Assembly: GCA_002269645.1 (NCBI GenBank)
Contig: NIVC01000212.1
Location: 434,001-498,000, forward strand
Source of the DNA: Macrostomum lignano
Lineage: Eukaryota
DNA: 64,000 bases
Direction: 5' to 3'
The notes beneath the pieces were generated by a model. That model ran no database searches and was not told the origin of the DNA. It saw only the letters and a program-made list of their open reading frames with translations. Made by a program: the position numbers and the translations under genes. Positions 31,136 through 61,129 of the stretch are shown here, piece after piece; the first letter of the stretch is position 1, and each line of letters starts with the position of its first letter.

Positions 31136-34100
31136 GGGAGAGAGGGAGATAAAGGTAGAGGGAGAGAGTCAGATGTCACTGCCTAATCAGTCGCAGCAGG
31201 ACAGCAAACAGAAGAGAGGCGGAAGAGAGATAAAGTATGAACTGGACAGACAATACGTTTTTACTGCAACAACCAGGCAGCCAAACTAGAATCGACAGCT
31301 GCAGTATTGCTGACTTACCCTGGCCTGAATAAGGTCCAGAATATTAGTAAACTCATTAGCCGAGCCGCGACCTTTGTACTCCGATTTGACCAGAGTAGTC
31401 ATTTGCTTCGCACCCTCCGTGCGCATCAGGTTTTTGTTGATGATGTAGCCAGCTGCCAGGCCCGCGCAGGCCAGAGCCAGGACCGCCATGATCACGATGT
31501 ACTTTTAATTGGCGAGTGCAAGGGTTGGAGTTAGGTAACTTGGAGAATTCCTTTCAACTATTAATTTTCTAGGATTATTGGACATTGGAATACTCGGACA
31601 CAGGGATACTCGGACATAAGGATACTCGGACACTGGGAGTATTCGGACACTAGGATACTCAGACACTGAGATACTTCGGACAGAGGGATACTCAGACACT
31701 GAGATACTTCGGACAGAGGGATACTCAGACACCTAGGATCTCGGACAACAAAGGCAGCAGTATAGAAGCTCACCACAATGATAAGCAGTTTAGAGTTGCA
31801 GCAGGCTCCAATAGCTCCAATTATGCCCGTGGCAACCAGAAACAGGCCAACAGCCAACAGAGCTATGCCAGCATAACCTGGGTTTCACAGTGCGAGTGTG
31901 GGTGGGCATGGATTATTATAGCGTGCGCAGGTCACGTACTTGTAACTTTCGAGGATCGATAAGTTTAATTATCTTTTATCTTTTTATCTGGGTCTGGGGG
32001 CACGATCTTCTAGCAACTTTATCTGGCACTGCTGGACTTCTCTCTACCCCTCTACCTCTCTCCCTCTCTACCTCTACCTCTCTACTTCTCTACCTCTCTC
32101 CCTCTCTCCCTCTCTCCCTCTCTCTCCCTCTCTCCCTCTCTCTCTCTCTCTCTCCCTCTCTACCTCTACCTCTCTACTTCTCTACCTCTCTCCCTCTCTA
32201 CCTCTCTACCTCTCTCCCTCTCTACCTCTACCTCTCTACCTCTCTCCCTCTCTACCTCTACCTCTCTACCTCTCTCCCTCTCTACCTCTACCTCTCTACA
32301 TCTCTACCTCTCTCCCTCTCTACCTCTACCTCTCTACATCTCTACCTCTCTCCCTCTCTACCTCTACCTCTCTAACTCTACCTCTCTACATCTCTACCTC
32401 TCTCCCTCTCTACCTCTACCTCTCTACTTCTCTACCTCTCTCCCTCTCTCCCTCTCTCCCTCTCTCTCCCTCTCTCCCTCTCTCTCTCTCTCCCTCTCTA
32501 CCTCTACCTCTCTACTTCTCTACCTCTCTCCCTCTCTACCTCTCTACCTCTCTCCCTCTCTACCTCTACCTCTCTACCTCTCTCCCTCTCTACCTCTACC
32601 TCTCTACCTCTCTCCCTCTCTACCTCTACCTCTCTACTTCTCTACCTCTCTCCCTCTCTACCTCTCTACCTCTCTCCCTCTCTACCTCTACCTCTCTACC
32701 TCTCTCCCTCTCTACCTCTACCTCTCTACATCTCTACCTCTCTCCCTCTCTACCTCTACCTCTCTACTTCTCTACCTCTCTCCCTCTCTACTTCTCTACC
32801 TCTCTCCCTCTCTACCTCTCTACCTCTACCTCTCTATCTCTCTCCCTCTCTACCTCTACCTCTCTACCTCTCTCCCTCTCTACCTCTACCTCTCTACCTC
32901 TCTCCCTCTCTACCTCTACCTCTCTACATCTCTACCTCTCTCCCTCTCTACCTCTACCTCTCTACATCTCTACCTCTCTCCCTCTCTACCTCTACCTCTC
33001 TAACTCTACCTCTCTTCCTCTCTACCTCTCTTCCTCTCTACCTCTCTTCCTCTCTACCTCTCTTTCTCTCTACCTCTCTTTCTCTCTACCTCTCTTCCTC
33101 TCTACCTCTCTTTCTCTCTACCTCTCTTCCTCTCTACCTCTCTTTCTCTCTACCTCTCTTCCTCTCTACCTCTCTTTCTCTCTACCTCTCTTTCTCTCTA
33201 CCTCTCTTTCTCTCTACCTCTCTTTCTCTCTACCTCTCTTTCTCTCTACCTCTCTTTCTCTCTACCTCTCTTTCTCTCTACCTCTCTTCCTCTCTACCTC
33301 TCTTTCTCTCTACCTCTCTTTCTCTCTACCTCTCTTTCTCTCTACCTCTCTTTCTCTCTACCTCTCTTTCTCTCTACCTCTCTTCCTCTCTACCTCTCTT
33401 TCTCTCTACCTCTCTTCCTTTCTCCCTCTCTCCCTCACTTACTCTCTTCCTGCTCTCTCTCTCTGCATCTCTCCCTCTCTGCATCTCTCCTTTTCTACTT
33501 CTCTACCTCTTCTCTACCTCTCTACCTCTCATTCACATTTAACAAATGAATCACATCGAGCTCACTTACTGACATAGACAGACCAGGTGCCCAGCACCTT
33601 CTGCAAATCGCTAAACGACAAAGGCGTGGAGGAACCAATCTGACTGCTGCCGATATTGGACAGGGCGGCGCTGAGTAGTTGAAATACCAGATTGCCGCCC
33701 CAGTGCAGAATGCACCCGATGATGGCCAGGACTACACCAATAGTCTGATCGATGGGTTGTGGAGTTGGCACAGATGTGATAGTTAGTGTACATTATCTAG
33801 CAATGCTTTGTGTGCTGATTTGAGTACCTTTGCGGCGCTGCTTTGTAATGGCACCGGTTAGGACGGCGCCTTTTAGGACGGCGCCTTTTAGGACGGCGCC
33901 TTTTCGGACGGCGCCTTCTATGGTGGCGCCTTTCTAGGGTGGCGCCTTTCTAAGGTGGCGCCTTTCTAGGTGGCGCCTTTCTAGGGTGGCGTCTTTCTAG
34001 GGTGGCGCCTTTCTAGGGTGGCGCCTTTCTAGGGTGGCGCCTTTCTAGGGTCGCGCCTTTCTAGGGTGGCGCCTTTCTAGGGTGGCGCCTTTCTAGGGTG

Positions 34101-39330: not shown

Positions 39331-39580
39331 CCAAAGTATCTCTTCTCAAACACCTACAGGCCAGTAACAGATAAAACATCAGTATTTTCAATCTTTACAC
39401 TTTCATCACGGTTACTTGACTTGTAGCAAAGAACAGAAAAGACGTCCGTGATAAACTGCAGGAATCTGTTGCAGAAGTGTGCGTGTTATTAGTCCCATTA
39501 GCCACTCGATTAATGGACTCGTTGAAAATGTCGATAATTTATTTTGTCTGCTCAAAGAGATTTATATTTGTTTGTCAGCG

Positions 39581-42500
39581 TCAGCCCAGCATGCAGGCTG
39601 TGCGGCCGATTCGACAGCGCTTTCGAATTTGATTGACAGCTCGGTCGGCTGCCTCGTTGGCTCTCTCCTCTTTGTCCAGTTGTTCATCCTCTCGCAGGTT
39701 GGCCAGCAGTTGGCGAAGTTGCATCAACCAGTGCGGATTTTTTTTGCTAACGGGCTGCACAATCACCGCCTCGATGCTAGCCGGTGCAGCCACGCTCGCT
39801 GGGGTGTCAGGCGTGTTAGGTAAGGGTCAGAGGGATGTGTCAGATAATTACTCGTATCATTAAATGTGTCAGAATTTGTTTTTTTCAGGTGTCAGATGTT
39901 AGTGATTAGGTGTCAGATGTCAGTGATTGGGTGTCAGATGTCAGTGATTGGGTGTCAGATGTCAGTGATTGGGTGTCAGATGTTAGTGATTGGGTGTCAG
40001 ATGTTAGTGATTGGGTGTCAGATGTCAGTGATTGGGTGTCAGATATCAGTGATTGGGTGTCAGATGTCAGTGATTGGGTGTCAGATGTTAGTGATTGGTG
40101 TCAGATATCAGTGGTTGGGTGTCAGATGTCAGTGATTGGGTGTCAGATATCAGTGATTGGGTGTCAGATGTCAGTGATTGGGTGTCAGATGTCAGTGATT
40201 GGGTGTCAGATGTCAGTGATTGGGTGTCAGATGTTAGTGATTGGGTGTCAGATGTTAGTGATTGGGTGTCAGATGTCAGTGATTGGGTGTCAGATGTCAG
40301 TGATTGGGTGTCAGATATCAGTGATTGGGTGTCAGATGTCAGTGATTGGGTGTCAGATGTTAGTGATTGGTGTCAGATATCAGTGGTTGGGTGTCAGATG
40401 TTAGTGATTAGGTGTCAGAGGTCAGTTATTGGGTGTCAGATGTTAGTGATTGGGTGTCAGATATCAGTGGTTGGGTGTCAGATGCTAGTGATTAGGTGTC
40501 AGATGTCAGTGATTGGGAGTCAGATGTCAGTGATTGGGTGTCAGATGTCAGTGATTGGGTGTCAGATGTTAGTGATTGGGTGTCAGATGTCAGTGAGTGG
40601 GTGTCAGATGTCAGTGATTGGGTGTCAGATGTCAGTGATTGGGTGTCAGATGTCAGTGATTGGGTGTCAGATGTCAGTGATTGGGTGTCAGATGTTAGTG
40701 ATTGGGTGTCAGATGTTAGTGATTGGGTGTCAGATGTCAGTGAGTGGGTGTCAGATGTTTGTGATTGGTGTCAGATGTTAGTGATTGGGTGTCAGATATT
40801 AGCGATTGGGTGTCAGATGTCAGTGATTGGGTGTCAGATGTCAGTGGTGAGTTATCAGACGCGACAGCTGAAGTGTCAGATATGATAAATGCAGTGTCAG
40901 ATATAAGAGATTAAGCTACATTAGTCGAACAGATGGCCCAACGCTGCATAGTCTGCAGTCCCAGTTTTAGGCTAACTCGCACGCGCAAATCAGATTCAGT
41001 GAAAAGGATTTTGTGCACTTTCTTTTCGAGCATAACGTAGCGAAACGTTCTACAAAGTTATGTTGTACAGCCAGTCCTTGAGACATATTTTTTTCAAATT
41101 TCCCTGGATAAAAAGGGGAAGAGGGATAAGGAGGATCAATAGCCGATGAGGCTACCGATCTTTCCCGGAAGCTGAATGCTTTTGTCCTTCGCTGGACTTC
41201 ATGCTATCAGATTGCTTGCGGAATTGTTAATGACAGTCGGTTTGGCGTGCAGAGGACCGCAAATAGCTCGTATGATACGGCTGCACGGATACAGCAGTTC
41301 ATATGCTGCGACCGCAAAGTTAGACAACTTCGTAATTGAGGTTGGAATGAAATTTAGTGCTACAGTGGAGTTGGACAGATTTAGCATGCATAACTTGAAG
41401 TGAGAAAGGACTGGAGTTGAGAGGAATGGAGAGACGAGTGGATAGAGAGATTGAAGGGAGAGATAAAGGCAAATTTTGAAGGATATATAGTATGACAGAC
41501 AATTGGAAGGAAGACAGACAGACAGAAAGGAAAGTAGACGGGAGACAGATAGAGAGAAACGAGACAGACGGACAGGAAGGCAGACAGCAATGCAGACAGG
41601 AAGGCAGACAGCAATGCAGACAGGAAGGCAGACAGGAAGGCAGACAGGAAGGCAGACAGCAATGCAGACAGGAAGGCAGACAGCAATAGAGACAGGAAGG
41701 CAGGCAGCAATGGAGACAGGAAGGCAGGCAGCAATGGAGACAGGAAGGCAGACAGGAAGGCAGGCAGGCAGGCAGACAGCAATGGAGACAGGAAGGCAGA
41801 CAGCAATGCAGACAGGAAGGCAGACAGCAATGCAGACAGGAAGGCAGACAGCAATGCAGACAGCAATGCAGACAGGAAGGCAGACAGCAATGCAGACAGG
41901 AAGGCAGACAGCAATGCAGACAGGAAGGCAGACAGCAATGCAGACAGGAAGGCAGACAGCAATGCAGACAGCAATGCAGACAGGAAGGCAGACAGCAATG
42001 CAGACAGGAAGGCAGACAGCAATGCAGACAGGAGGGCAGACAGCAATGCAGACAGGAAGGCAGACAGCAATGCAGACAGGAAGGCAGACAGCAATGCAGA
42101 CAGGAAGGCAGACAGCAATGCAGACAGGAAGGCAGGCAGCAATGCAGACAGGAAGGCAGGCAGCAATGGAGACAGGAAGGCAGGCAGCAATGCAGACAGG
42201 AAGGCAGACAGCAATGCAGACAGGAAGGCAGACAGCAATAGAGACAGGAAGGCAGACAGGAAGGCAGACAGGATGAGACACTACAAAAAGGTTAGCAGAG
42301 GTACAATCTGTGATTCTGGATACAGATAATGGGAATAATCAGTGAGACTGACAAGCAAAGATCTCGTGGCGATCAGCTGCCTCACCAATCAAAAGCATGA
42401 CCTTGGAACAGTGGCTTTCTTTGAAAAAATTCAGAAAGGAAATCAAGGCTGAATTGAACGCGAGAGGTCAATAGAGGAATATTGCCAACTAACAATGAGC

Positions 42501-42600
42501 TAAGTGTTTTACCTGCGAATTGAGGATAGGCCCAGCAGACACTGTTGAGCAGAGCTGACACACAGATAACTGTCGCTAGACACAGCTGACACACAGCCAT
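39581..42600 (-). CDS. Secreted peptide precursor (101 aa), candidate neuropeptide
   Basis: Exon 1 42600-42513: MAVCQLCLATVICVSALLNSVCWAYPQFA, donor CAG|GTAAAA, phase 1. Exon 2 39798-39581: branch-like cctaac plus ccccag acceptor, phase 1. Ends ...NQIRKR-CRIGRTACMLG*. Confidence 0.72.
39888..40850. repeat. 21-bp minisatellite (gggtgtcagatgtcagtgatt)
   Basis: About 45 units in the precursor intron. Confidence 0.96.
41510..42275. repeat. 24-bp minisatellite (gacaggaaggcagacagcaatgca)
   Basis: About 30 units in the precursor intron. Confidence 0.95.
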
Positions 42601-43106
42601 AACCTCAGCCTGTCTCTTTGGTCACTGATGCTCGAAAATATGCCAGCAGTAAGTGACTGCAGACAGTGGGTGTTGACTCGCCTAGCAACGAGTCGGTTAA
42701 ATAGCTTGCCCCCGCGGAGCAGCTGACGATTGGCCCATCTCAGTGCTCGGGCCACCCACGCTGTAGGGGAACTGCAAGCTCTAGATTAAGAATCCACCAA
42801 TCCCATTAATTAGCAGACTTTGCTGCCGCTTGAAATTCCTCTGGGCCTTAAAGGGCTTGGCAAAAAATTCTTTTTGACCGATTTTGAGCACGAATTCTCG
42901 CCATTCAAGCTTTTAATTAGTTCCAAATTCTTGAAAACATGCGTGCGACAAGCAGCTGTTTGGTCTGTGTTTTGCATCCTTGATTAGCATTGTCTGACTG
43001 CGGAAGGACTGTTGATGGTCGTGACATTGACGGAATTGACTGGGTAATTTGTCAAGATGAAATTGTGACTAATTGTGACTAATTGTTACTAATGGCTAGG
43101 ATAACA

Positions 43107-48033: not shown

Positions 48034-49481
48034 CTACACGCTACTATCAGCAGAGCTGTCAGCAGTAGTAGCGGCGGTTGTAACGCGAGAAGCGGTGCTG
48101 TTGCTGGTTGCAGCGGTGCAGACGCACTCCGTGGGGCCGTTGGACAGCACAGCCTCGTAGAAGACCCACAGGAGAAAGGCCAGGCCCAGGATTAGTGCTA
48201 AGCAGACAAGGGCAGCACGATAGCGTTTAACCAGGTGTAAAAACTGATTACCCGGGTTGCTAGGCCGGGGCAGTTGTCCTGCAGAAACGGATTCTTCTCC
48301 TAGTAGCAGCTCAACGTCCCCGTCGTCTGCGTTTGTTGTGTTATTGTTGATCCTCAACTGATGCGGCGGCTGACCTGATGAAGAAGCCGGAGGCTGCACC
48401 TCAGACTCGATAGAGGCGAGTAGAGCTCTTGTATTGCTGATGAACAATCGGCGATTGTCTGTTAAGGAAGCTGACTGTTGGGAGCCCGGCGGCTGGTGCT
48501 GCAGCATCGAGCGCAGCGTCTCGTGCAGATCGTTCAGCTCCCAGGTCAGACTCTTCAGACTGCGAACCAGCTCGTCTGGGGATTTTTTAACAAACAAAAC
48601 GGTGGAGAACAAATTTTACTGGAGGGGGCCGGGGCCGTTGAGAGTGAACTAGCGCATTTGCAAGTTAAGCGCAGCTGGATGCGGTTAGTACAGTAGCGAT
48701 GTACGCAGCTACTCGCATCACCCCTTTAGTTTACCAGCTGTTATTACCTACCGATCGATACACTTGTCTCTGGGTCTGTCTAGCATTCTGCCTCTCCGGT
48801 GTCGAGAATGGAGAGCACTTCATCTGTGAATGTTCAGGACAGGCTCACCTACCTCGACCTAAACCCGGACCTCTCCGCTCCAACGTTTTCAGAACCGAGA
48901 ACTTCTGCCAGCTCGTAAACCGTAAGGGCTACCGGACGAGCGACCATCCACCTCCTGCTGGACTCTCCGGAGGGGACCGCGCTGCGGACACTGGCAGCAA
49001 CCGGATCTCCCTGCGGGATACCGCAACACTAGCTGCCCGTGGTCGCCAGCTGGGTTAGCGGAATGGGCATTCAGGTGCCCGGAGCCCTGCAGCTAAAAGT
49101 CAAGTCAGCTAACTCCAAGACAATCCAATAATTAATACTCATTCTAAGGGTTATACCCCTAACACCATAACTTTGCGTACGTCGTCACAGGTTACCCGGT
49201 GCGAATTGCGGCAACAAAAAACCGGCCTGGGCCAAAATGTCATCAACCTTTGCAGCAGGTCCATGGGCAGGCAATAGTTTCCAACGCTTACCTGTAAGCC
49301 ATCTGAACTCGTCCTGCAGCAAATCAGCTGGAACCGCGTCCGCAGCCCTGTCGCCGTCTCCATGCTCATGAGAATCAGCAGATTTAAGCGCTCTCCATCG
49401 ATCGAAGCTTCTCTGCAACGCTTTGAGCTTCTCCTCCAGAGCCTGCTGGTCTACAGAAAATGGATCAGTTTCTTGGTCCAT
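48034..49481 (-). CDS. Syntaxin-6/10 N-terminal (Habc) domain membrane protein lacking a SNARE motif (~243 aa)
   Basis: Exons 49481-49292 and 48575-48034, phase 1. MDQETDPF...FDRWRAL...FRWLTDELVRSLKSLTWELNDLHETL...RRLFISNTR parallels STX6 EDPF...FQRW...[24 protein letters not shown]...RKAFITSTR. One TM segment, AALVCLALILGLAFLLWVFY. Confidence 0.8.
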
Positions 49482-50724
49482 TCTTTTTCCTGCAGTAAAT
49501 ACCTTAGACCAGTAACACAGTTGGGTTAGCGTTTTATCGGCTATAGTGAGACACCATATATCTACGTGCATTTACAGAAATGAAATCAAAAGGTCTTATT
49601 AATCAGCCAAGTTAAACCTTATCTATCAATGATATGTGCTGGCAGCGAGTCCATTTGTTGGTGCTCTCTACCTTGTGCTTGCAATTTCAACCGTATTTTT
49701 AAAGCACAAGTACAATCGCTGCATATTTATTAAAAATCTGCAGTAGATTTTTAGTAGTTTCACACCAGGGAGCGCGGGCGCAATGAACAGATTCTTACTT
49801 TTAATTTTTTCCGAGTTATTGTACAAAAGCAAAAGACTTACATTTGTAGAAACACTGGAAGGGACCTCAAAATGTCTTTCTTCATTTTGCTTTTCAATAA
49901 TCGGCACAAATTTCATTATTCTATGGCTTTACCCCGAGTCAGGCTTGCAGCCAAGCCAAGTTGACAACCAAGCCAAAAAGTTGATCATTCTCATTTGGCA
50001 GCAGTAGATTTGGTCTTGCCCATAGACATAACATCGACGGGAAAAGGCAATCAAACTGATTATTCGGCCATAGACATTGCCACAAAGAATTAGGACGCCG
50101 GCAGCAAACCAGTTGAAATACAGACAACACTATGAACGACTATAAAAGTCCCACTCGTCACGGCGCATACTACACAATCTACCATTCGTCGTCTATTGTC
50201 CGAAGTACATGTAAGTAGCTTCCAAGAAGTACCCGTCTGTTATCTTAAGCTTTATAAAATTGGTCCATGGTAAAAGTTGTCCATGGGCGCACAGCGGCCC
50301 TGACTGGGGAAAAGTCGTGTAATACATTACACGATTCTCCAAAATAACAGAATCAAGGGCATTCGCTAATCAGCCTATCTGCTAAAAAACTGAATCAATG
50401 GAAAAATTGTTTTCTTTTTTTCGCAAGAAAATTCGCAAAAAAATACTATTATCTGTTTAGTCTTTATTCAAACTGCTGTGTAAATGAGTAAACAACGCAC
50501 TGATGTACATGTACATAGAATGCATGAAAATTGGATGAAAATGCAATGGGAAAAACAATTTGAACTGCAGATTTAAATTTTTTTGTACTTACTACTAAAA
50601 TGTTACTACTGCAAGTAAGAGGAGTAGGAATCTATCTAGAACGTCTTAAATAGATAAAGCGGAAACAATGCAATTAAATAAAAACAAAAACACAGTAAAT
50701 GCCAACTGAGATTGCACTCTTGTC

Positions 50725-51292: not shown

Positions 51293-53615
51293 CCGCAGCA
51301 GGAATTCATCCGACGCCCCAGTCTGAGCAGCCAGCTGCGAGAAGATGAGGCCGGTGCAGGCCAAAACCAGTCCAACGGGCTGTCCAGTGACATCAGCCAG
51401 AAGGCCGGCCAGCTCTCGCAGACAGTTGCTAGGCCGTTGCTGGGCAGGCAGCAGGGCGGCTGCGCAGACAATGGGAGCCACGGTGTGCAGACAGAGCAGC
51501 CGACGCCGCCTCAGACAATGGCCGTCAAGATTGGCTAATTGGCTGTCATCGGCCCTGTACAGCAGGTCGCAGCGCCTGTAGCAGAAATTGATAATCCTGC
51601 GAAGCTGATCGAAAATCGACTGTCCGACAGTTAAAAACGCAAACCGGCGGCCCAGCTCGGCCAGATGATAGGCGGCAACCTCGACTGCGCAGTCGAAGTT
51701 TAACGAATAGTTCAGAGCGGCGAAGGCCAGTTGCTCTGTCTCCACGTATTGGCGCCTAGCAGCCCGGCGACTGTGCCCTGCCAGCGGCGGCACCCCCAAC
51801 AAGCCCAGCAAGTCGACAGCGTCGGTTTTGCCGAATAGAATTCGAGAAGCGCGCAGTTTCATGGCTAGCGAAAACGCCACGGTCAGCACTGTGAGCGGGA
51901 ATTTGCGCCGGACAGACTGGAAAGTTTTTAGGAAAAATTTGAAGCTTTTTATTATTTCATTTAAGCTGACCTACTAGCGGTAGTAGAGTTTGCAAACGCT
52001 TAGAAATTCGATAAAAATACTTTAAAACAAGACCATATTAAGGTTGCTTATACCATTGTAATTGAATTCTAAAAGTAGTTTATGGCAGATTCTTAAGGTA
52101 GTTCGGTGAGGCTCTGCAACCAACTGACTGCCAAACCTAACCCTAACCTAAAAACCGAAACCCTAAGCCTAAAAACCATAAGACTAACTTAAAACCACAT
52201 TCCAAACCTAAAACCATAACCCTAACCAAAAAAACCATAACCCAAACCGAAAACCATAGCTCTAACATAAAAAGCATAACACTAACCTAAAAACCAACAC
52301 CCCTAACATAAAACCCAAAACCCTTAACCTAAAACCATAACCCTAACCTAAAAACCAACACCCCTAACATAAAACCCATAACCCTAACCTAAAACCATAA
52401 CCCCAACCTAAAAACCATAACCCCAACCTAAAACCATAACCCTAACCTAAAAACCATAACGCTAACCTAAAAACCTTAACACTAACTTAAAACCATAACC
52501 CTAACCTAAAACCATAACCCCAACCTAAAAACTATAACCCTAACTTAAAAACCATAAGCCAAAAAAAAACCATAGCCCTAACCTAAATAACCATAACACT
52601 AACCTAAAAACCAACACTCCTAACCTCAAAACCGAAACCCTTAACCCAAAAAACCATAACGCTAACCTAAAACCATAACCCCAACCTAGAAATCATAACC
52701 CTAACCTAAATCCGAAATTTCTAACCTAAAAACTTAAACTCTTACTAAAAACCATAACCATAACCAAAAAACAATAACCCAAACCGAAAACCATAACCCT
52801 AACCAAAAAACAATAACCCAAACCGAAAACCATAGCCCTAACCAAAAAACCATAACGCTAACCCAAAAACCATAACGCTAACCTAAAACCATAACCCCAA
52901 CCTAAAAACCATAACCCCAACCTAAAAACCATAACCCCAACCTAAAAACCATAACCCCAACCTAAAAACCATAACCCCAACCTAAAAACCATAACCCCAA
53001 CCTAAAAACCATAACCCCAACCTAAAAACCATAACCCCAACCTAAAAACCATAACCCCAAGCTAAAAACCATAACCCTAACCTAAACCAGAAGATAGCTA
53101 CATGGTTTCACCTGGCTACTCCGCCGGAACGGGAACCGATTTCCCCACTCCACGCAGATCCAGTACCGCAGCAGCCGGCAGAAGATTTCCACAGCTAGCC
53201 TGGCAACACCGCCGGACAGTCTCAGCAGGCGACAGATCGTGAACAGCAGACGAGCTGCTTCGGCGATAGTCTGCTGAAGTCGGCCATCCAGCCGGCCGCA
53301 GCGGATTAAATAAACATTTAGCGACCGATCCCGGGGACGACAAACTCCTGTGGCCAGCTGGGGAAACCGACGACCAGTGATGTCGATAAGACCCGGCGGC
53401 AGCTGAGGATGAGGATATGATGAGGCCAACAGGGAGGCGGGCGAGAAGTCGGCAGCTGGAGAAGATAGCAAGTTATCGACATGCGGATTGTGCCGTGCAC
53501 TCTTCTGGTGTCGTTGCCGCCGTCGCTGCTGCCATTGTCGCTTTTGTGAAGCCTGTGGATGCTGCCACGTTGCGGGCGACGGCTGCTGCTGAAAGTTAGC
53601 AGACGGAGAGCTCAT
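51290..53615 (-). CDS. CNTD1: Cyclin N-terminal domain-containing protein 1 (COSA-1 family, meiotic crossover cyclin-like), ~376 aa
   Basis: Exons 53615-53112 and 51916-51290, phase 0. LLFTICRLLRLSGGVARLAVEIFCRL, RRKFPLTVLTVAFSLAMKL, ETEQLAFAALNYSLN and LADVTGQP align by eye with CNTD1. Start chosen at the first ATG; the ORF track uses an upstream GTG at 53660. Confidence 0.78.
52135..53088. repeat. 19-20-bp C/A-rich minisatellite (ccataaccccaacctaaaaa), CNTD1 intron
   Basis: Also present at 55259-55980 and 58160-58881 within the duplicated units. Confidence 0.93.
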
Positions 53616-53685
53616 TAGCACAGAAATGTGCAATAGAGCCAGCACTGCAACAGAAGCCACGTTTTATAAGGTCGACAGTATAAGT

Positions 53686-54155
53686 GCTAGGGTGCACCTG
53701 AATAACTGCTAGGGTGCACCTGAATAACTGCTAGGGTGCACCTGAGTAACTGCTAGGGTGCACCTGAGAAACTGCTAGGGTGCACCTGAAACTTCACCTG
53801 AATAACTGCTAGGGTGCACCTGAATAACTGCTAGGGTGCACCTGAAACTTCACCTTAATAACTGCTAGGGTGCACCTGAATAACTGCTAGGGTGCACCTG
53901 AAACTTCACCTGAATAACTGCTAGGGTGCACCTGAATAACTGCTAGGGTGCACCTGAATAACTGCTAGGGTGCACCTGAGTAACTGCTAGGGTGCACCTG
54001 AATAACTGCTAGGGTGCACCTGAGTAACTGCTAGGGTGCACCTGAGAAACTGCTAGGGTGCACCTGAAACTTCACCTGAATAACTGCTAGGGTGCACCTG
54101 AATAACTGCTAGGGTGCACCTGAATAACTGCTAGGGTGCACCTGAGTAACTTCAC
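53686..54155. repeat. 22-bp minisatellite (tgctagggtgcacctgaataac)
   Basis: Further copies at 56578-57057 and 59479-59958. Confidence 0.95.
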
Positions 54156-54699
54156 AGGAAAAGGATGCCGCATAGACTAGAATCAGTAAATATAAGTATA
54201 ATGCAACACGCAAAAGAATACACGAGTAAAAGTGCTCACAAGCTGCGGGACACAATTAGCTTGAATGTATTTCAGCTTGAACATAATAAAACTTTTTTCA
54301 TTAAAATTTTTAGAAGCAGTAGTAATGATCAAAAGAAAAGATTCAGAGTTCAGCTGATAAACTAATGAAGCGACTAGAATACATACATACAGCTAAATAA
54401 GGATCCTTAATACAGGAAATAATAGTACAGAATAGAAGATATATTACATCGGAACTCTGCAAGCATGACATCAGCACATCCGGAATTGGAAGAAATACTG
54501 TACACAGAGATTAAGCAGCATAAACTGTTATATCTGGTAAATCTGAATAAAAATCTGTAACTTCTAGTTCTAACTAGGTCATATAAGGGTCGTTAGACAG
54601 GGAAACTGGGTTAAATAATTATTTATTTATTTAGGTAAAAGGCTATCTCAGGGGTCAATTCAAGGTCAAAGAGGTCGAATAAGTCCCTACGGAATCCCT

Positions 54700-55125
54700 C
54701 TAGGTCACTCGGGGTCACGTAGCCTTCAAGGTCACTCGGGGTCACGTAGCCTTCAAGGTCACTCGGGGTCACGTAGGGACAATCCTTCAAGGTCACACGG
54801 GGTCAAATAGGGACAATCCTCCAGGGTCTTAAGGGGTCACGTAGGGACAATCCACCAGGGTCACACGGGGTCACGTAGGGACAATCCTCCAGGGTCTAAA
54901 GGGGTCACGTAGGGACAATCCTCCAGGGTCTTAAGGGGTCACGTAGGGACAATCCATCAGGGTCACACGGGGTCACGTAGGGACAATCCTCCAGGGTCTT
55001 AAGGGGTCACGTAGGGACAATCCACCAGGGTCACACGGGGTCACGTAGGGACAACCCTTCAAGGTCACACGGGGTCACGTAGGGACAATCCTCCAGGGTC
55101 TTAAGGGGTCACGTCGGGACAAAGC
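54700..55125. repeat. 34-bp minisatellite (ggggtcacgtagggacaatcctccagggtcttaa)
   Basis: Further copies at ~57600-58025 and, longer, at ~60500-61062 just after the SHKBP1 stop. Confidence 0.93.
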
Positions 55126-55191
55126 TACAATCAAATAGTGTCTCTAGCTTAAGCCGTGGAAAGTCAAGGTCACACGAGGTCACGCGCGGTC

Positions 55192-55258
55192 TCAGGTGTC
55201 CGGCAGGCCGCTAGACACGCTGCTAGACGGCGTCAGATGGCAGCTCTCTAACAGGCTG
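55192..55258 (-). pseudogene. Orphan fragment: last ~21 codons plus stop of SHKBP1 (also at 58093-58159)
   Basis: Encodes [21 protein letters not shown], truncated at the duplication junction. Confidence 0.8.
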
Positions 55259-56003
55259 CTAAAAACATAACCCTAACCTAAAAACCAACACCCCTAACAT
55301 AAAACCCATAACCCTAACCTAAAACCATAACCCCAACCTAAAAACCATAACCCCAACCTAAAAACCATAACCCTAACCTAAAACCATAACCCCAACCTAA
55401 AAACTATAACCCTAACTTAAAAACCATAAGCCAAAAAAAAACCATAGCCCTAACCTAAATAACCATAACACTAACCTAAAAACCAACACTCCTAACCTCA
55501 AAACCGAAACCCTTAACCCAAAAAACCATAACGCTAACCTAAAACCATAACCCCAACCTAGAAATCATAACCCTAACCTAAATCCGAAATTTCTAACCTA
55601 AAAACTTAAACTCTTACTAAAAACCATAACCATAACCAAAAAACAATAACCCAAACCGAAAACCATAACCCTAACCAAAAAACAATAACCCAAACCGAAA
55701 ACCATAGCCCTAACCAAAAAACCATAACGCTAACCCAAAAACCATAACGCTAACCTAAAACCATAACCCCAACCTAAAAACCATAACCCCAACCTAAAAA
55801 CCATAACCCCAACCTAAAAACCATAACCCCAACCTAAAAACCATAACCCCAACCTAAAAACCATAACCCCAACCTAAAAACCATAACCCCAACCTAAAAA
55901 CCATAACCCCAACCTAAAAACCATAACCCCAACCTAAAAACCATAACCCCAAGCTAAAAACCATAACCCTAACCTAAACCAGAAGATAGCTACATGGTTT
56001 CAC

Positions 56004-56507
56004 CTGGCTACTCCGCCGGAACGGGAACCGATTTCCCCACTCCACGCAGATCCAGTACCGCAGCAGCCGGCAGAAGATTTCCACAGCTAGCCTGGCAACA
56101 CCGCCGGACAGTCTCAGCAGGCGACAGATCGTGAACAGCAGACGAGCTGCTTCGGCGATAGTCTGCTGAAGTCGGCCATCCAGCCGGCCGCAGCGGATTA
56201 AATAAACATTTAGCGACCGATCCCGGGGACGACAAACTCCTGTGGCCAGCTGGGGAAACCGACGACCAGTGATGTCGATAAGACCCGGCGGCAGCTGAGG
56301 ATGAGGATATGATGAGGCCAACAGGGAGGCGGGCGAGAAGTCGGCAGCTGGAGAAGATAGCAAGTTATCGACATGCGGATTGTGCCGTGCACTCTTCTGG
56401 TGTCGTTGCCGCCGTCGCTGCTGCCATTGTCGCTTTTGTGAAGCCTGTGGATGCTGCCACGTTGCGGGCGACGGCTGCTGCTGAAAGTTAGCAGACGGAG
56501 AGCTCAT
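56004..56507 (-). CDS. CNTD1: Duplicate CNTD1 exon 1 (copy 2)
   Basis: Same translation as 53615-53112, with an intact GT donor. Confidence 0.65.
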
Positions 56508-58904
56508 TAGCACAGAAATGTGCAATAGAGCCAGCACTGCAACAGAAGCCACGTTTTATAAGGTCGACAGTATAAGTGCTAGGGTGCACCTGAATAACTG
56601 CTAGGGTGCACCTGAATAACTGCTAGGGTGCACCTGAGTAACTGCTAGGGTGCACCTGAGAAACTGCTAGGGTGCACCTGAATAACTGCTAGGGTGCACC
56701 TGAAACTTCACCTGAATAACTGCTAGGGTGCACCTGAATAACTGCTAGGGTGCACCTGAAACTTCACCTGAATAACTGCTAGGGTGCACCTGAATAACTG
56801 CTAGGGTGCACCTGAATAACTGCTAGGGTGCACCTGAATAACTGCTAGGGTGCACCTGAATAACTGCTAGGGTGCACCTGAGTAACTGCTAGGGTGCACC
56901 TGAGAAACTGCTAGGGTGCACCTGAAACTTCACCTGAATAACTGCTAGGGTGCACCTGAATAACTGCTAGGGTGCACCTGAATAACTGCTAGGGTGCACC
57001 TGAATAACTGCTAGGGTGCACCTGAATAACTGCTAGGGTGCACCTGAGTAACTTCACAGGAAAAGGATGCCGCATAGACTAGAATCAGTAAATATAAGTA
57101 TAATGCAACACGCAAAAGAATACACGAGTAAAAGTGCTCACAAGCTGCGGGACACAATTAGCTTGAATGTATTTCAGCTTGAACATAATAAAACTTTTTT
57201 CATTAAAATTTTTAGAAGCAGTAGTAATGATCAAAAGAAAAGATTCAGAGTTCAGCTGATAAACTAATGAAGCGACTAGAATACATACATACAGCTAAAT
57301 AAGGATCCTTAATACAGGAAATAATAGTACAGAATAGAAGATATATTACATCGGAACTCTGCAAGCATGACATCAGCACATCCGGAATTGGAAGAAATAC
57401 TGTAAACAGAGATTAAGCAGCATAAACTGTTATATCTGGTAAATCTGAATAAAAATCTGTAACTTCTAGTTCTAACTAGGTCATATAAGGGTCGTTAGAC
57501 AGGGAAACTGGGTTAAATAATTATTTATTTATTTAGGTAAAAGGCTATCTCAGGGGTCAATTCAAGGTCAAAGAGGTCGAATAAGTCCCTACGGAATCCC
57601 TCTAGGTCACTCGGGGTCACGTAGCCTTCAAGGTCACTCGGGGTCACGTAGCCTTCAAGGTCACTCGGGTCACGTAGGGACAATCCTTCAAGGTCACACG
57701 GGGTCAAATAGGGACAATCCTCCAGGGTCTTAAGGGGTCACGTAGGGACAATCCACCAGGGTCACACGGGGTCACGTAGGGACAATCCTCCAGGGTCTAA
57801 AGGGGTCACGTAGGGACAATCCTCCAGGGTCTTAAGGGGTCACGTAGGGACAATCCATCAGGGTCACACGGGGTCACGTAGGGACAATCCTCCAGGGTCT
57901 TAAGGGGTCACGTAGGGACAATCCACCAGGGTCACACGGGGTCACGTAGGGACAACCCTTCAAGGTCACACGGGGTCACGTAGGGACAATCCTCCAGGGT
58001 CTTAAGGGGTCACGTCGGGACAAAGCTACAATCAAATAGTGTCTCTAGCTTAAGCCGTGGAAAGTCAAGGTCACACGAGGTCACGCGCGGTCTCAGGTGT
58101 CCGGCAGGCCGCTAGACACGCTGCTAGACGGCGTCAGATGGCAGCTCTCTAACAGGCTGCTAAAAACATAACCCTAACCTAAAAACCAACACCCCTAACA
58201 TAAAACCCATAACCCTAACCTAAAACCATAACCCCAACCTAAAAACCATAACCCCAACCTAAAAACCATAACCCTAACCTAAAACCATAACCCCAACCTA
58301 AAAACTATAACCCTAACTTAAAAACCATAAGCCAAAAAAAAACCATAGCCCTAACCTAAATAACCATAACACTAACCTAAAAACCAACACTCCTAACCTC
58401 AAAACCGAAACCCTTAACCCAAAAAACCATAACGCTAACCTAAAACCATAACCCCAACCTAGAAATCATAACCCTAACCTAAATCCGAAATTTCTAACCT
58501 AAAAACTTAAACTCTTACTAAAAACCATAACCATAACCAAAAAACAATAACCCAAACCGAAAACCATAACCCTAACCAAAAAACAATAACCCAAACCGAA
58601 AACCATAGCCCTAACCAAAAAACCATAACGCTAACCCAAAAACCATAACGCTAACCTAAAACCATAACCCCAACCTAAAAACCATAACCCCAACCTAAAA
58701 ACCATAACCCCAACCTAAAAACCATAACCCCAACCTAAAAACCATAACCCCAACCTAAAAACCATAACCCCAACCTAAAAACCATAACCCCAACCTAAAA
58801 ACCATAACCCCAACCTAAAAACCATAACCCCAACCTAAAAACCATAACCCCAAGCTAAAAACCATAACCCTAACCTAAACCAGAAGATAGCTACATGGTT
58901 TCAC

Positions 58905-59408
58905 CTGGCTACTCCGCCGGAACGGGAACCGATTTCCCCACTCCACGCAGATCCAGTACCGCAGCAGCCGGCAGAAGATTTCCACAGCTAGCCTGGCAAC
59001 ACCGCCGGACAGTCTCAGCAGGCGACAGATCGTGAACAGCAGACGAGCTGCTTCGGCGATAGTCTGCTGAAGTCGGCCATCCAGCCGGCCGCAGCGGATT
59101 AAATAAACATTTAGCGACCGATCCCGGGGACGACAAACTCCTGTGGCCAGCTGGGGAAACCGACGACCAGTGATGTCGATAAGACCCGGCGGCAGCTGAG
59201 GATGAGGATATGATGAGGCCAACAGGGAGGCGGGCGAGAAGTCGGCAGCTGGAGAAGATAGCAAGTTATCGACATGCGGATTGTGCCGTGCACTCTTCTG
59301 GTGTCGTTGCCGCCGTCGCTGCTGCCATTGTCGCTTTTGTGAAGCCTGTGGATGCTGCCACGTTGCGGGCGACGGCTGCTGCTGAAAGTTAGCAGACGGA
59401 GAGCTCAT
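58905..59408 (-). CDS. CNTD1: Duplicate CNTD1 exon 1 (copy 3)
   Basis: Same translation, intact donor; T>A at 59439 upstream of the ATG. Confidence 0.65.
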
Positions 59409-61129
59409 TAGCACAGAAATGTGCAATAGAGCCAGCACAGCAACAGAAGCCACGTTTTATAAGGTCGACAGTATAAGTGCTAGGGTGCACCTGAATAACT
59501 GCTAGGGTGCACCTGAATAACTGCTAGGGTGCACCTGAGTAACTGCTAGGGTGCACCTGAGAAACTGCTAGGGTGCACCTGAATAACTGCTAGGGTGCAC
59601 CTGAAACTTCACCTGAATAACTGCTAGGGTGCACCTGAATAACTGCTAGGGTGCACCTGAAACTTCACCTGAATAACTGCTAGGGTGCACCTGAATAACT
59701 GCTAGGGTGCACCTGAATAACTGCTAGGGTGCACCTGAATAACTGCTAGGGTGCACCTGAATAACTGCTAGGGTGCACCTGAGTAACTGCTAGGGTGCAC
59801 CTGAGAAACTGCTAGGGTGCACCTGAAACTTCACCTGAATAACTGCTAGGGTGCACCTGAATAACTGCTAGGGTGCACCTGAATAACTGCTAGGGTGCAC
59901 CTGAATAACTGCTAGGGTGCACCTGAATAACTGCTAGGGTGCACCTGAGTAACTTCACAGGAAAAGGATGCCGCATAGACTAGAATCAGTAAATATAAGT
60001 ATAATGCAACACGCAAAAGAATACACGAGTAAAAGTGCTCACAAGCTGCGGGACACAATTAGCTTGAATGTATTTCAGCTTGAACATAATAAAACTTTTT
60101 TCATTAAAATTTTTAGAAGCAGTAGTAATGATCAAAAGAAAAGATTCAGAGTTCAGCTGATAAACTAATGAAGCGACTAGAATACATACATACAGCTAAA
60201 TAAGGATCCTTAATACAGGAAATAATAGTACAGAATAGAAGATATATTACATCGGAACTCTGCAAGCATGACATCAGCACATCCGGAATTGGAAGAAATA
60301 CTGTAAACAGAGATTAAGCAGCATAAACTGTTATATCTGGTAAATCTGAATAAAAATCTGTAACTTCTAGTTCTAACTAGGTCATATAAGGGTCGTTAGA
60401 CAGGGAAACTGGGTTAAATAATTATTTATTTATTTAGGTAAAAGGCTATCTCAGGGGTCAATTCAAGGTCAAAGAGGTCGAATAAGTCCCTACGGAATCC
60501 CTCTAGGTCACTCGGGGTCACGTAGCCTTCAAGGTCACTCGGGTCACGTAGCCTTCAAGGTCACTCGGGGTCACGAGGGGACAATCCTTCAAGGTCACAC
60601 GGGGTCAAATAGGGACAATCCTCCAGGGTCTTAAGGGGTCACGTAGGGACAATCCACCAGGGTCACACGGGGTCACGTAGGGACAATCCTCCAGGGTCTT
60701 AAGGGGTCACGTAGGGACAATCCTCCAGGGTCTTAAGGGGTCACGTAGGGACAATCCACCAGGGTCACACGGGGTCACGTAGGGACAATCCTCCAGGGTC
60801 TTAAGGGGTCACGTAGGGACAATCCATCAGGGTCACACGGGGTCACGTAGGGACAATCCTCCAGGGTCTTAAGGGGTCACGTAGGGACAATCCACCAGGG
60901 TCACACGGGGTCACGTAGGGACAATCCTCCAGGGTCTTAAGGGGTCACGTAGGGACAATCCACCAGGGTCACACGGGGTCACGTAGGGACAACCCTTCAA
61001 GGTCACACGGGGTCACGTAGGGACAATCCTCCAGGGTCTTAAGGGGTCACGTCGGGACAAAGCTACAATCAAATAGTGTCTCTAGCTTAAGCCGTGGAAA
61101 GTCAAGGTCACACGAGGTCACGCGCGGTC

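Follow-up and report, generated by a model that had tools for sequence, protein, structure and literature searches.

Does a short two-exon gene of the flatworm Macrostomum lignano encode the precursor of a cyclic neuropeptide? The question was raised by the window, which is the whole stretch of 64,000 nucleotides that was analysed (contig NIVC01000212.1, positions 434,001 to 498,000 of the forward strand). The gene occupies positions 39581-42600 of the window on the minus strand. An initial annotation of this DNA, made from the letters alone, had proposed that the gene encodes a novel cyclic, amidated neuropeptide, CRIGRTACML-NH2, at the end of a 101-aa protein. In our study, the gene was found to be real and to consist of two coding exons; it is already annotated but uncharacterised, and the gene model is not new. 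The product is best explained as an orphan prepropeptide, which would give rise to a single decapeptide, cyclic and amidated, with the role of a neuropeptide or hormone, from a TATA-driven, transcribed gene present in three homeologous or duplicated copies. We give this reading a probability of roughly 55%.

The gene and its annotation

The two minus-strand coding exons joined to 306 nt (88 + 218) at a phase-1 junction, and the translation is the 101-aa protein MAVCQLCLATVICVSALLNSVCWAYPQFAASVAAPASIEAVIVQPVSKKNPHWLMQLRQLLANLREDEQLDKEERANEAADRAVNQIRKRCRIGRTACMLG, exactly as the initial annotation had read it. The parts of the gene are as follows.

42513..42600, minus strand: coding exon 1, 88 nt, from Met1 to Ala29 and the first base of codon 30
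39799..42512, minus strand: single phase-1 intron, 2714 nt, GT..AG, containing two minisatellites
39581..39798, minus strand: coding exon 2, 218 nt including the TGA stop, residues 30-101

Exon 1 starts with an ATG at 42600, in a context with G at -3 and G at +4. Its 3' end is ...TTCGCAG, followed by GTAAAA, with the GT donor at 42512..42511, and the acceptor side of exon 2 contained a pyrimidine-rich tract ending ...CACCCCAG. The two minisatellites that had been described between the exons were both located in the intron. The first has a 21-bp unit and extends over 39888-40846 (45.8 copies), and the second has a 24/48-bp unit and extends over 41505/41571-42273. The size of the intron differs among the three gene copies (~2.7, 2.9, and 3.8 kb). 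As had also been pointed out, the list of open reading frames (ORFs) shows the gene as two separate and seemingly unrelated short entries, one of 72 aa at 42382..42600 and one of 70 aa at 39581..39793.

The 101-aa product was found to be 100% identical to GenBank PAA87901.1 (UniRef A0A267GPE6), "hypothetical protein BOX15_Mlig020507g1" of Macrostomum lignano. The annotated gene (Mlig020507.g1, contig NIVC01000212.1) spans 3020 bp and matches 39581-42600 exactly. The annotation of NIVC01 in GenBank consists of a genome-guided transcriptome that had been filtered, in which StringTie/TACO was run on RNA-seq together with a de novo transcriptome and the ORFs were called by TransDecoder; it is not an ab initio prediction (PMC5730564). 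Because the annotation was built from RNA-seq, the 42513/39798 junction has indirect transcript support. The word "novel" thus applies to the functional reading only, since the gene and the protein were already public as a hypothetical protein. Neither the gene id Mlig020507 nor the string RIGRTACML was present in any paper of the literature searched, which included the flatworm and Macrostomum neuropeptide literature, where nothing was found on Mlig020507. The searched supplements of M. lignano papers listed neither Mlig020507 nor Mlig034016.

The predicted precursor and its conservation

The features predicted in the protein are given below, from the N-terminus to the stop.

42529..42600, minus strand: predicted signal peptide, residues 1-24 (MAVCQLCLATVICVSALLNSVCWA), from hydropathy and the (-3,-1) rule
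39740..39745, minus strand: Lys48-Lys49 (KK), Asn-Asn in the other two copies
39617..39625, minus strand: tribasic Arg88-Lys89-Arg90, predicted prohormone-convertase site, invariant in all copies
39587..39616, minus strand: predicted mature peptide CRIGRTACML, residues 91-100, with a C-x6-C loop and a net charge of +2
39581..39586, minus strand: Gly101 (predicted amide donor) and the TGA stop

By heuristic assessment, the signal peptide agrees with the cleavage between VCWA and YP that had been proposed. Its hydrophobic core is formed by residues 6-18 (Kyte-Doolittle 9-residue windows 2.1-2.4), followed by a polar c-region, NSVCWA, with Cys at -3 and Ala at -1 ahead of Tyr25; the string SVCWAYPQ is kept in the other copies. 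The end of the precursor, described as KR-CRIGRTACML-G-stop, was present as described and is in fact tribasic (RKR), and it was invariant in 3/3 copies. The KK site of the initial annotation fared differently. It is not conserved, and since it is replaced by Asn-Asn in the other copies, processing probably does not require Lys48-Lys49. The "acidic helical spacer" held in part. An acidic stretch is present at residues 65-80, and helices were predicted by single-sequence AlphaFold (no alignment). The spacer as a whole contained 9 acidic and 8 basic residues (net charge -1), and the AlphaFold model had no fold and a mean predicted local distance difference test (pLDDT) of 49.9, a value at which the helical character of the spacer is unproven.

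A tribasic RKR ahead of a peptide and a Gly-stop after it follow the established rules of prohormone processing, and convertases can cut ahead of a Cys in the P1' position, as they do in pro-endothelin-1. In planarians, pc2 is needed for the processing of amidated peptides (PMC2953531). The following steps, like the cell type and the receptor, are read from the sequence of the precursor. The signal peptide (residues 1-24) would be removed at entry into the endoplasmic reticulum, and the fast-evolving, partly acidic spacer of ~64 residues would serve as pro-region only. A PC2/PC1-type convertase would cleave after Arg88-Lys89-Arg90, and PHM/PAL would turn Leu100-Gly101 into Leu-NH2; no carboxypeptidase step would be needed because the precursor ends in Gly-stop. 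A Cys91-Cys98 disulfide would be formed, and the cationic cyclic CRIGRTACML-NH2 would be released from neurosecretory cells to act on a receptor, most likely a G-protein-coupled receptor (GPCR). The calculated monoisotopic [M+H]+ of CRIGRTACML is 1120.554 if the peptide is amidated and disulfide-bonded.

Two further genomic copies were found on contigs NIVC01001185.1 and NIVC01000312.1 (proteins PAA71115.1/PAA85611.1). All three copies are syntenic, with syntaxin-6 upstream and tetraspanin downstream in the same order. All of them retain the ATG, the GT/AG splice sites, and the CCAAT, TATTTAA, and AATAAA elements, which are placed in the window as follows.

42733..42729, minus strand: CCAAT box, core promoter, kept in all three copies
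42703..42697, minus strand: TATTTAA (TATA) box, core promoter, ~100 nt 5' of the ATG, kept in all three copies
39538..39543, minus strand: AATAAA poly(A) signal, 38 nt past the stop, kept in all three copies

The promoter segment from -99 to -47 (53 nt) was 100% identical in one of the other copies (L001). A conserved poly(A) signal this close to the TGA speaks against further splicing downstream, by which the stop would be lost. The protein of the window copy was 77-79% identical to those of the other two copies, and the end of the protein, ...DRAVNQIRKRCRIGRTACMLG, was identical in all three. The only indel of the coding sequence among the copies was 9 nt long and in frame; the indels of the untranslated regions (UTRs) included ones of 1, 2, and 27 nt, that of 27 nt being found in the 5' UTR. 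The substitutions between the window copy and L001, counted by the Nei-Gojobori method, gave the following proportions of nonsynonymous (pN) and synonymous (pS) differences.

Signal peptide: pN 0.21, pS 0.37
Spacer: pN 0.095-0.108, pS 0.11-0.13 (near neutral)
Last 21 codons (DRAVNQIRKRCRIGRTACMLG): pN 0 (0/46 sites; ~5 changes expected), pS 0.06 (1 change)

At the level of DNA, the last 63 coding nucleotides were 98.4% identical, versus 88-94% for the adjacent intron, the 3' flank/UTR, and the spacer. As far as a comparison within one species may suggest, the product is constrained and the spacer drifts, as would be expected of a neuropeptide precursor; toxin and antimicrobial-peptide genes show the opposite.

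Signal codons 3-7 read VCQLC in the window (42586-42594) and ANSFA in L001 (10046-10060), an apparent compensated -1/+1 frameshift around a shared CAGCT. The coding sequences of L001 and L002 differ at one nucleotide. Several kilobases off, the flanks of L001/L002/L003 are 94-97% identical, and the gene region (spacer, intron, 3' flank) is just 88-94% identical. The duplicated blocks may thus have diverged unevenly or undergone gene conversion, as far as can be judged from the sequences compared.

Several observations weigh against a neuropeptide precursor. The signal peptide has no basic n-region. The terminal motif [KR]R-C-x4-8-C-x0-3-G-stop has an expected frequency of 0.085 per 64 kb in Markov-simulated DNA (~1 per 750 kb), and by itself it is not significant. 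The conservation of the mature peptide rests on within-species paralogues differing at ~11% of nonsynonymous sites. The last 63 nt contained 1 difference where ~5 would be expected at the local neutral divergence of 6-12% (P ~0.03), so that constraint on the C-terminal DNA is suggestive, not strong, given the modest power of a comparison within one species. The invariant C-terminal block is not confined to the peptide and its KR but reaches 8 residues further towards the N-terminus, and residues 32-45 form another such block. Among 5.8 billion proteins, a word-indexed search with 7 candidates found no relative other than the query and its paralogue in M. lignano, and an exhaustive HMMER search with a two-sequence profile against 1.84 billion cluster representatives retrieved only the protein itself. 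Thus no homologue was found outside M. lignano in those collections, which may lack other Macrostomum transcriptomes.

The case rests on a conjunction, namely an in-frame signal exon with canonical splice sites, a transcript-derived model, the promoter boxes, the AATAAA, and two intact copies. Alternatively, the ORF may be translated but left unprocessed, as a 77-residue secreted protein with a C-terminal loop, or it may be fortuitous and have no peptide function. TransDecoder calls any sufficiently long ORF, most of the protein is near-neutral, AlphaFold gave low confidence and no fold, and the terminal motif is not rare by chance. Against both possibilities, all three copies have kept the reading frame open, although they have diverged by ~12% at the nucleotide level and differ by a 9-nt in-frame indel and a compensated frameshift in the signal; the C-terminal 21 residues are invariant, and the promoter core and the poly(A) signal are conserved. 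We consider an unprocessed or fortuitous ORF improbable.

The precursor may also encode a secreted peptide of non-neuronal glands (prostate/seminal-fluid, epidermal, pharyngeal) or a cationic defence peptide, produced through the same cleavage and amidation enzymes. Such a role would suit a secreted protein that is small and lineage-restricted, whose pro-region evolves fast and near neutrality, and for which no homologue was found outside the species; the predicted product, cationic (+2, amidated) and disulfide-looped, would suit it as well. Moreover, a signal, an acidic pro-region, a KR, and a short C-terminal peptide are also typical of many toxin and antimicrobial-peptide precursors. The pattern of conservation argues the other way, since such families have a hypervariable mature peptide and a conserved signal, and the reverse was found here. 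Ten residues with two basic ones are also short for a membrane-active peptide; the precursor carries one peptide copy, and the gene family is not expanded. We consider a gland or defence peptide rather unlikely.

Comparison with known peptide families

The initial annotation could not assign the peptide to a known family, and our results lead to the same position. In Pfam, no family matched at E<=10 except for a spurious ARC6 match (E = 0.06); the similarity to allatostatin-C (AstC) was marginal, and calcitonin was rejected.

The spacing of the AstC ring, which had been likened to that of the peptide, was compared with the supplementary sequences of Thiel et al., 2021 (PMC8557429) as reference precursors. 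The AstC and AstC2 precursors of molluscs, annelids, brachiopods, and nemerteans are, together with the arthropod AstC/CC/CCC precursors, the closest known systems. The spiralian AstC precursors are 90-120 aa long; a signal is followed by a spacer rich in Q/L/E/R, and a single C-x6-C peptide stands at the C-terminus behind a dibasic site (PMC8557429). Several of the spiralian peptides are amidated, as in Lineus (...CLVNLVACYGKRRRR) and Lingula (...CQVWIVSCFGK), and the nemertean AstC2 DYVRDCFFHAVSCY-NH2 has been confirmed by mass spectrometry (PMC8557429). The AstC loops of protostomes always contain six residues (Koch et al., 2022, PMC9048919). The loop is aliphatic-rich, with an aliphatic or aromatic first residue, a common Asn, and FxP in many members, and the spiralian AstC genes contain a phase-0 intron in the pro-region (PMC9048919).

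On this background, the M. lignano peptide might be a highly derived flatworm AstC; its gene would then descend from the AstC gene of spiralians, and its receptor would be a GPCR of the AstC/somatostatin type. The layout speaks for such a descent. The size of the precursor, the single C-terminal copy after a dibasic site, and the Q/L/E/R-rich, predicted helical spacer are shared. The loop C91-x6-C98 contains six residues, and C-terminal amidation occurs in several AstC members. The oyster sequence ...ENDRNQIRERKRSHIRC... resembles ...ADRAVNQIRKRC... of M. lignano, as does ...ENDRNQIRERKRSHIRCLVNVIACYRKK of oyster when set against ...ADRAVNQIRKRCRIGRTACMLG, and a short NQIR..KR stretch lies ahead of the peptide as in the oyster precursor. 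The chiton ring CRVHAIAC may likewise be set beside CRIGRTAC. Hidden Markov models (HMMs) built from 27-37 AstC precursors scored the two M. lignano proteins at 4.9-12.2 bits (hmmsearch), and hhalign gave a probability of 46% with a pairwise E = 2e-4.

The chemistry of the ring and the controls on these scores argue against it. The loop R-I-G-R-T-A is cationic and hydrophilic, not aliphatic, and it contains no FxP and neither Asn nor His at position 3. Against 30 spiralian AstC/AstC2 sequences, only R at position 1 (found also in chitons), I at position 2, and A at position 6 match, which is about chance (estimate ~1.4 expected). Cys2 is followed by Met, where an aromatic residue was found in every AstC sequence compared; two residues (Met-Leu) follow the ring instead of one; and Cys1 stands directly after KR, with no N-terminal extension. 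The pro-region intron is in phase 1 (after base 1 of codon 30), not in phase 0. The HMMs paired Cys98, and not Cys91, with the first AstC cysteine, so that the score derives from the signal, the spacer, and the KR. When the signal and the 13-residue tail were fixed and the spacer was shuffled, 0.6-28% of the nulls, depending on the model, reached the real HMM score. In a local hhalign rerun, the real score was 20.6 versus 14.2 +/- 3.2 for the nulls, 5% of which were at or above it. When the protein database was searched with the AstC profile, only oyster proteins came back, so that this search is uninformative on flatworm AstC.

The likeness to AstC thus stands for the six-residue loop and the layout of the precursor, and fails for the chemistry of the ring, the residue after Cys2, the N-terminal extension, and the phase of the intron. 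The precursor is laid out like an AstC precursor but cannot be filed as AstC, the profile similarity being marginal once layout and composition are controlled. We regard descent from AstC as doubtful. If the peptide were AstC-derived, it would be a somatostatin/AstC-type ligand from the flatworm lineage with a cationic instead of an aliphatic ring, and it would provide a data point on how far AstC/somatostatin-type ligands diverge.

Calcitonin contains a five-residue ring at the N-terminus of a peptide of ~32 residues, followed by an amphipathic helix and a Pro-NH2 end. The echo of the calcitonin ring (CGNLSTCMLG) that had been noted in the M. lignano peptide was reduced to a four-residue coincidence, C-M-L-G; the quoted ring has five residues versus six here. 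As in calcitonin/CGRP/DH31, a disulfide ring is followed by C-M-L-G (calcitonin) and the C-terminus is amidated (predicted here), but the Gly after ML would be the amide donor in M. lignano, whereas it is part of the peptide in calcitonin. CMLG is also found at the first Cys of melanin-concentrating hormone, and the tetrapeptide is not diagnostic. No match to the Pfam family Calc_CGRP_IAPP was found at E<=10. The calcitonin family was rejected on the six-residue ring, on the end of the peptide two residues later, on the missing C-terminal helix, and on the missing Pfam match.

Other small disulfide-looped, mostly amidated neuropeptides of invertebrates are CCAP, vasopressin/oxytocin (platytocin), CCHamide, and elevenin. 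The ring contains 5 residues in arthropod CCAP, 4 in vasopressin/oxytocin, and 8 in elevenin; that of CCHamide contains six, but the peptide lies directly after the signal peptide and ends ...G-x-H-NH2. All four were rejected on the size of the ring or the position of the peptide. The vasopressin/oxytocin precursors further carry a neurophysin domain, and none of the signature residues of these families (FCN, CxxxNCP) is present in the M. lignano peptide. The CCWamide/agatoxin-like peptides were rejected since eight Cys are required, and the doppelganger-related (DREP) families of cone snails were rejected since their architectures are unrelated.

Lineage-restricted predicted pro-neuropeptides are common, and many of them are unvalidated. 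The flatworm neuropeptide catalogues contain mostly linear amidated peptides, and only a few cyclic ones, for example the vasopressin/oxytocin-type platytocin. In Platynereis, the peptides CCAa, PCNa, QRIa, and QDNa were likewise predicted from transcriptomes as short precursors with amidation and potential disulfide bridges (PMC3890597). For these orphan pro-neuropeptides of Platynereis, no receptor is known, and orthologues are restricted to a narrow clade (PMC3890597). Their sequences are unrelated to that of the M. lignano peptide, and some of them have mass-spectrometric support, whereas the M. lignano peptide is predicted from sequence.

A tentative extension of the neuropeptide reading is that CRIGRTACML-NH2 founds a family of cyclic amidated neuropeptides that is specific to macrostomids or flatworms and has its own receptor, and that may have arisen de novo or diverged from AstC beyond recognition; we consider this possible, at odds clearly below even. 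If validated, the predicted peptide itself would add a cyclic amidated peptide to M. lignano, a model with transgenesis and RNAi, and provide a tractable ligand for receptor deorphanisation. An unnamed hypothetical protein gains a testable functional annotation, and nothing is overturned.

Flanking sequence and repeats

Upstream of the gene, a cluster of homeodomain-type motifs was found.

42784..42812, minus strand: homeodomain-type motif cluster with TAATTA, two GGATT, and TAATC, near-identical in the other two copies

A regulatory role of this cluster is assumed from its motifs only. The cluster belongs to a region (42784-42860, minus strand) ~150 bp upstream of the TATA box, which is near-identical in the three copies and contains TAATTAAT, GGATTGGTGGATT, and TAATCT. 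This region could be a cell-type-specific enhancer and might then be used for a reporter transgene.

The neighbours of the gene in the window are a syntaxin-6-like gene (PF09177) at ~48034-49571 and a tetraspanin (PF00335) from ~34887 downwards, both on the minus strand. Among the neighbouring ORFs, a Pfam match was obtained only for the syntaxin-6 exon. A scan of the whole window with Rfam gave no RNA family.

A macro-tandem repeat with a unit of ~2.9 kb was found at 52133-61060, where the unit is present three times. Each unit contained a 20-bp telomere-like array (AAACCATAACCCTAACCTAA, which contains CCCTAA), a 44-bp array, a 34-bp array, and a minus-strand ORF of 192 aa (53082..53660, 55974..56552, and 58875..59453) with no Pfam match. 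An array of the 8-bp unit CTCTCTAC was found at 32040-33530 (~191 copies), and it accounts for the extreme spike of the GC/AT skew at 32-34 kb. Simple and tandem repeats are reported to make up 15% of the M. lignano genome (PMC5730564). The window contained dozens of minisatellite arrays with periods of 8-50, and the minisatellites inside the intron of the candidate gene are therefore unremarkable.

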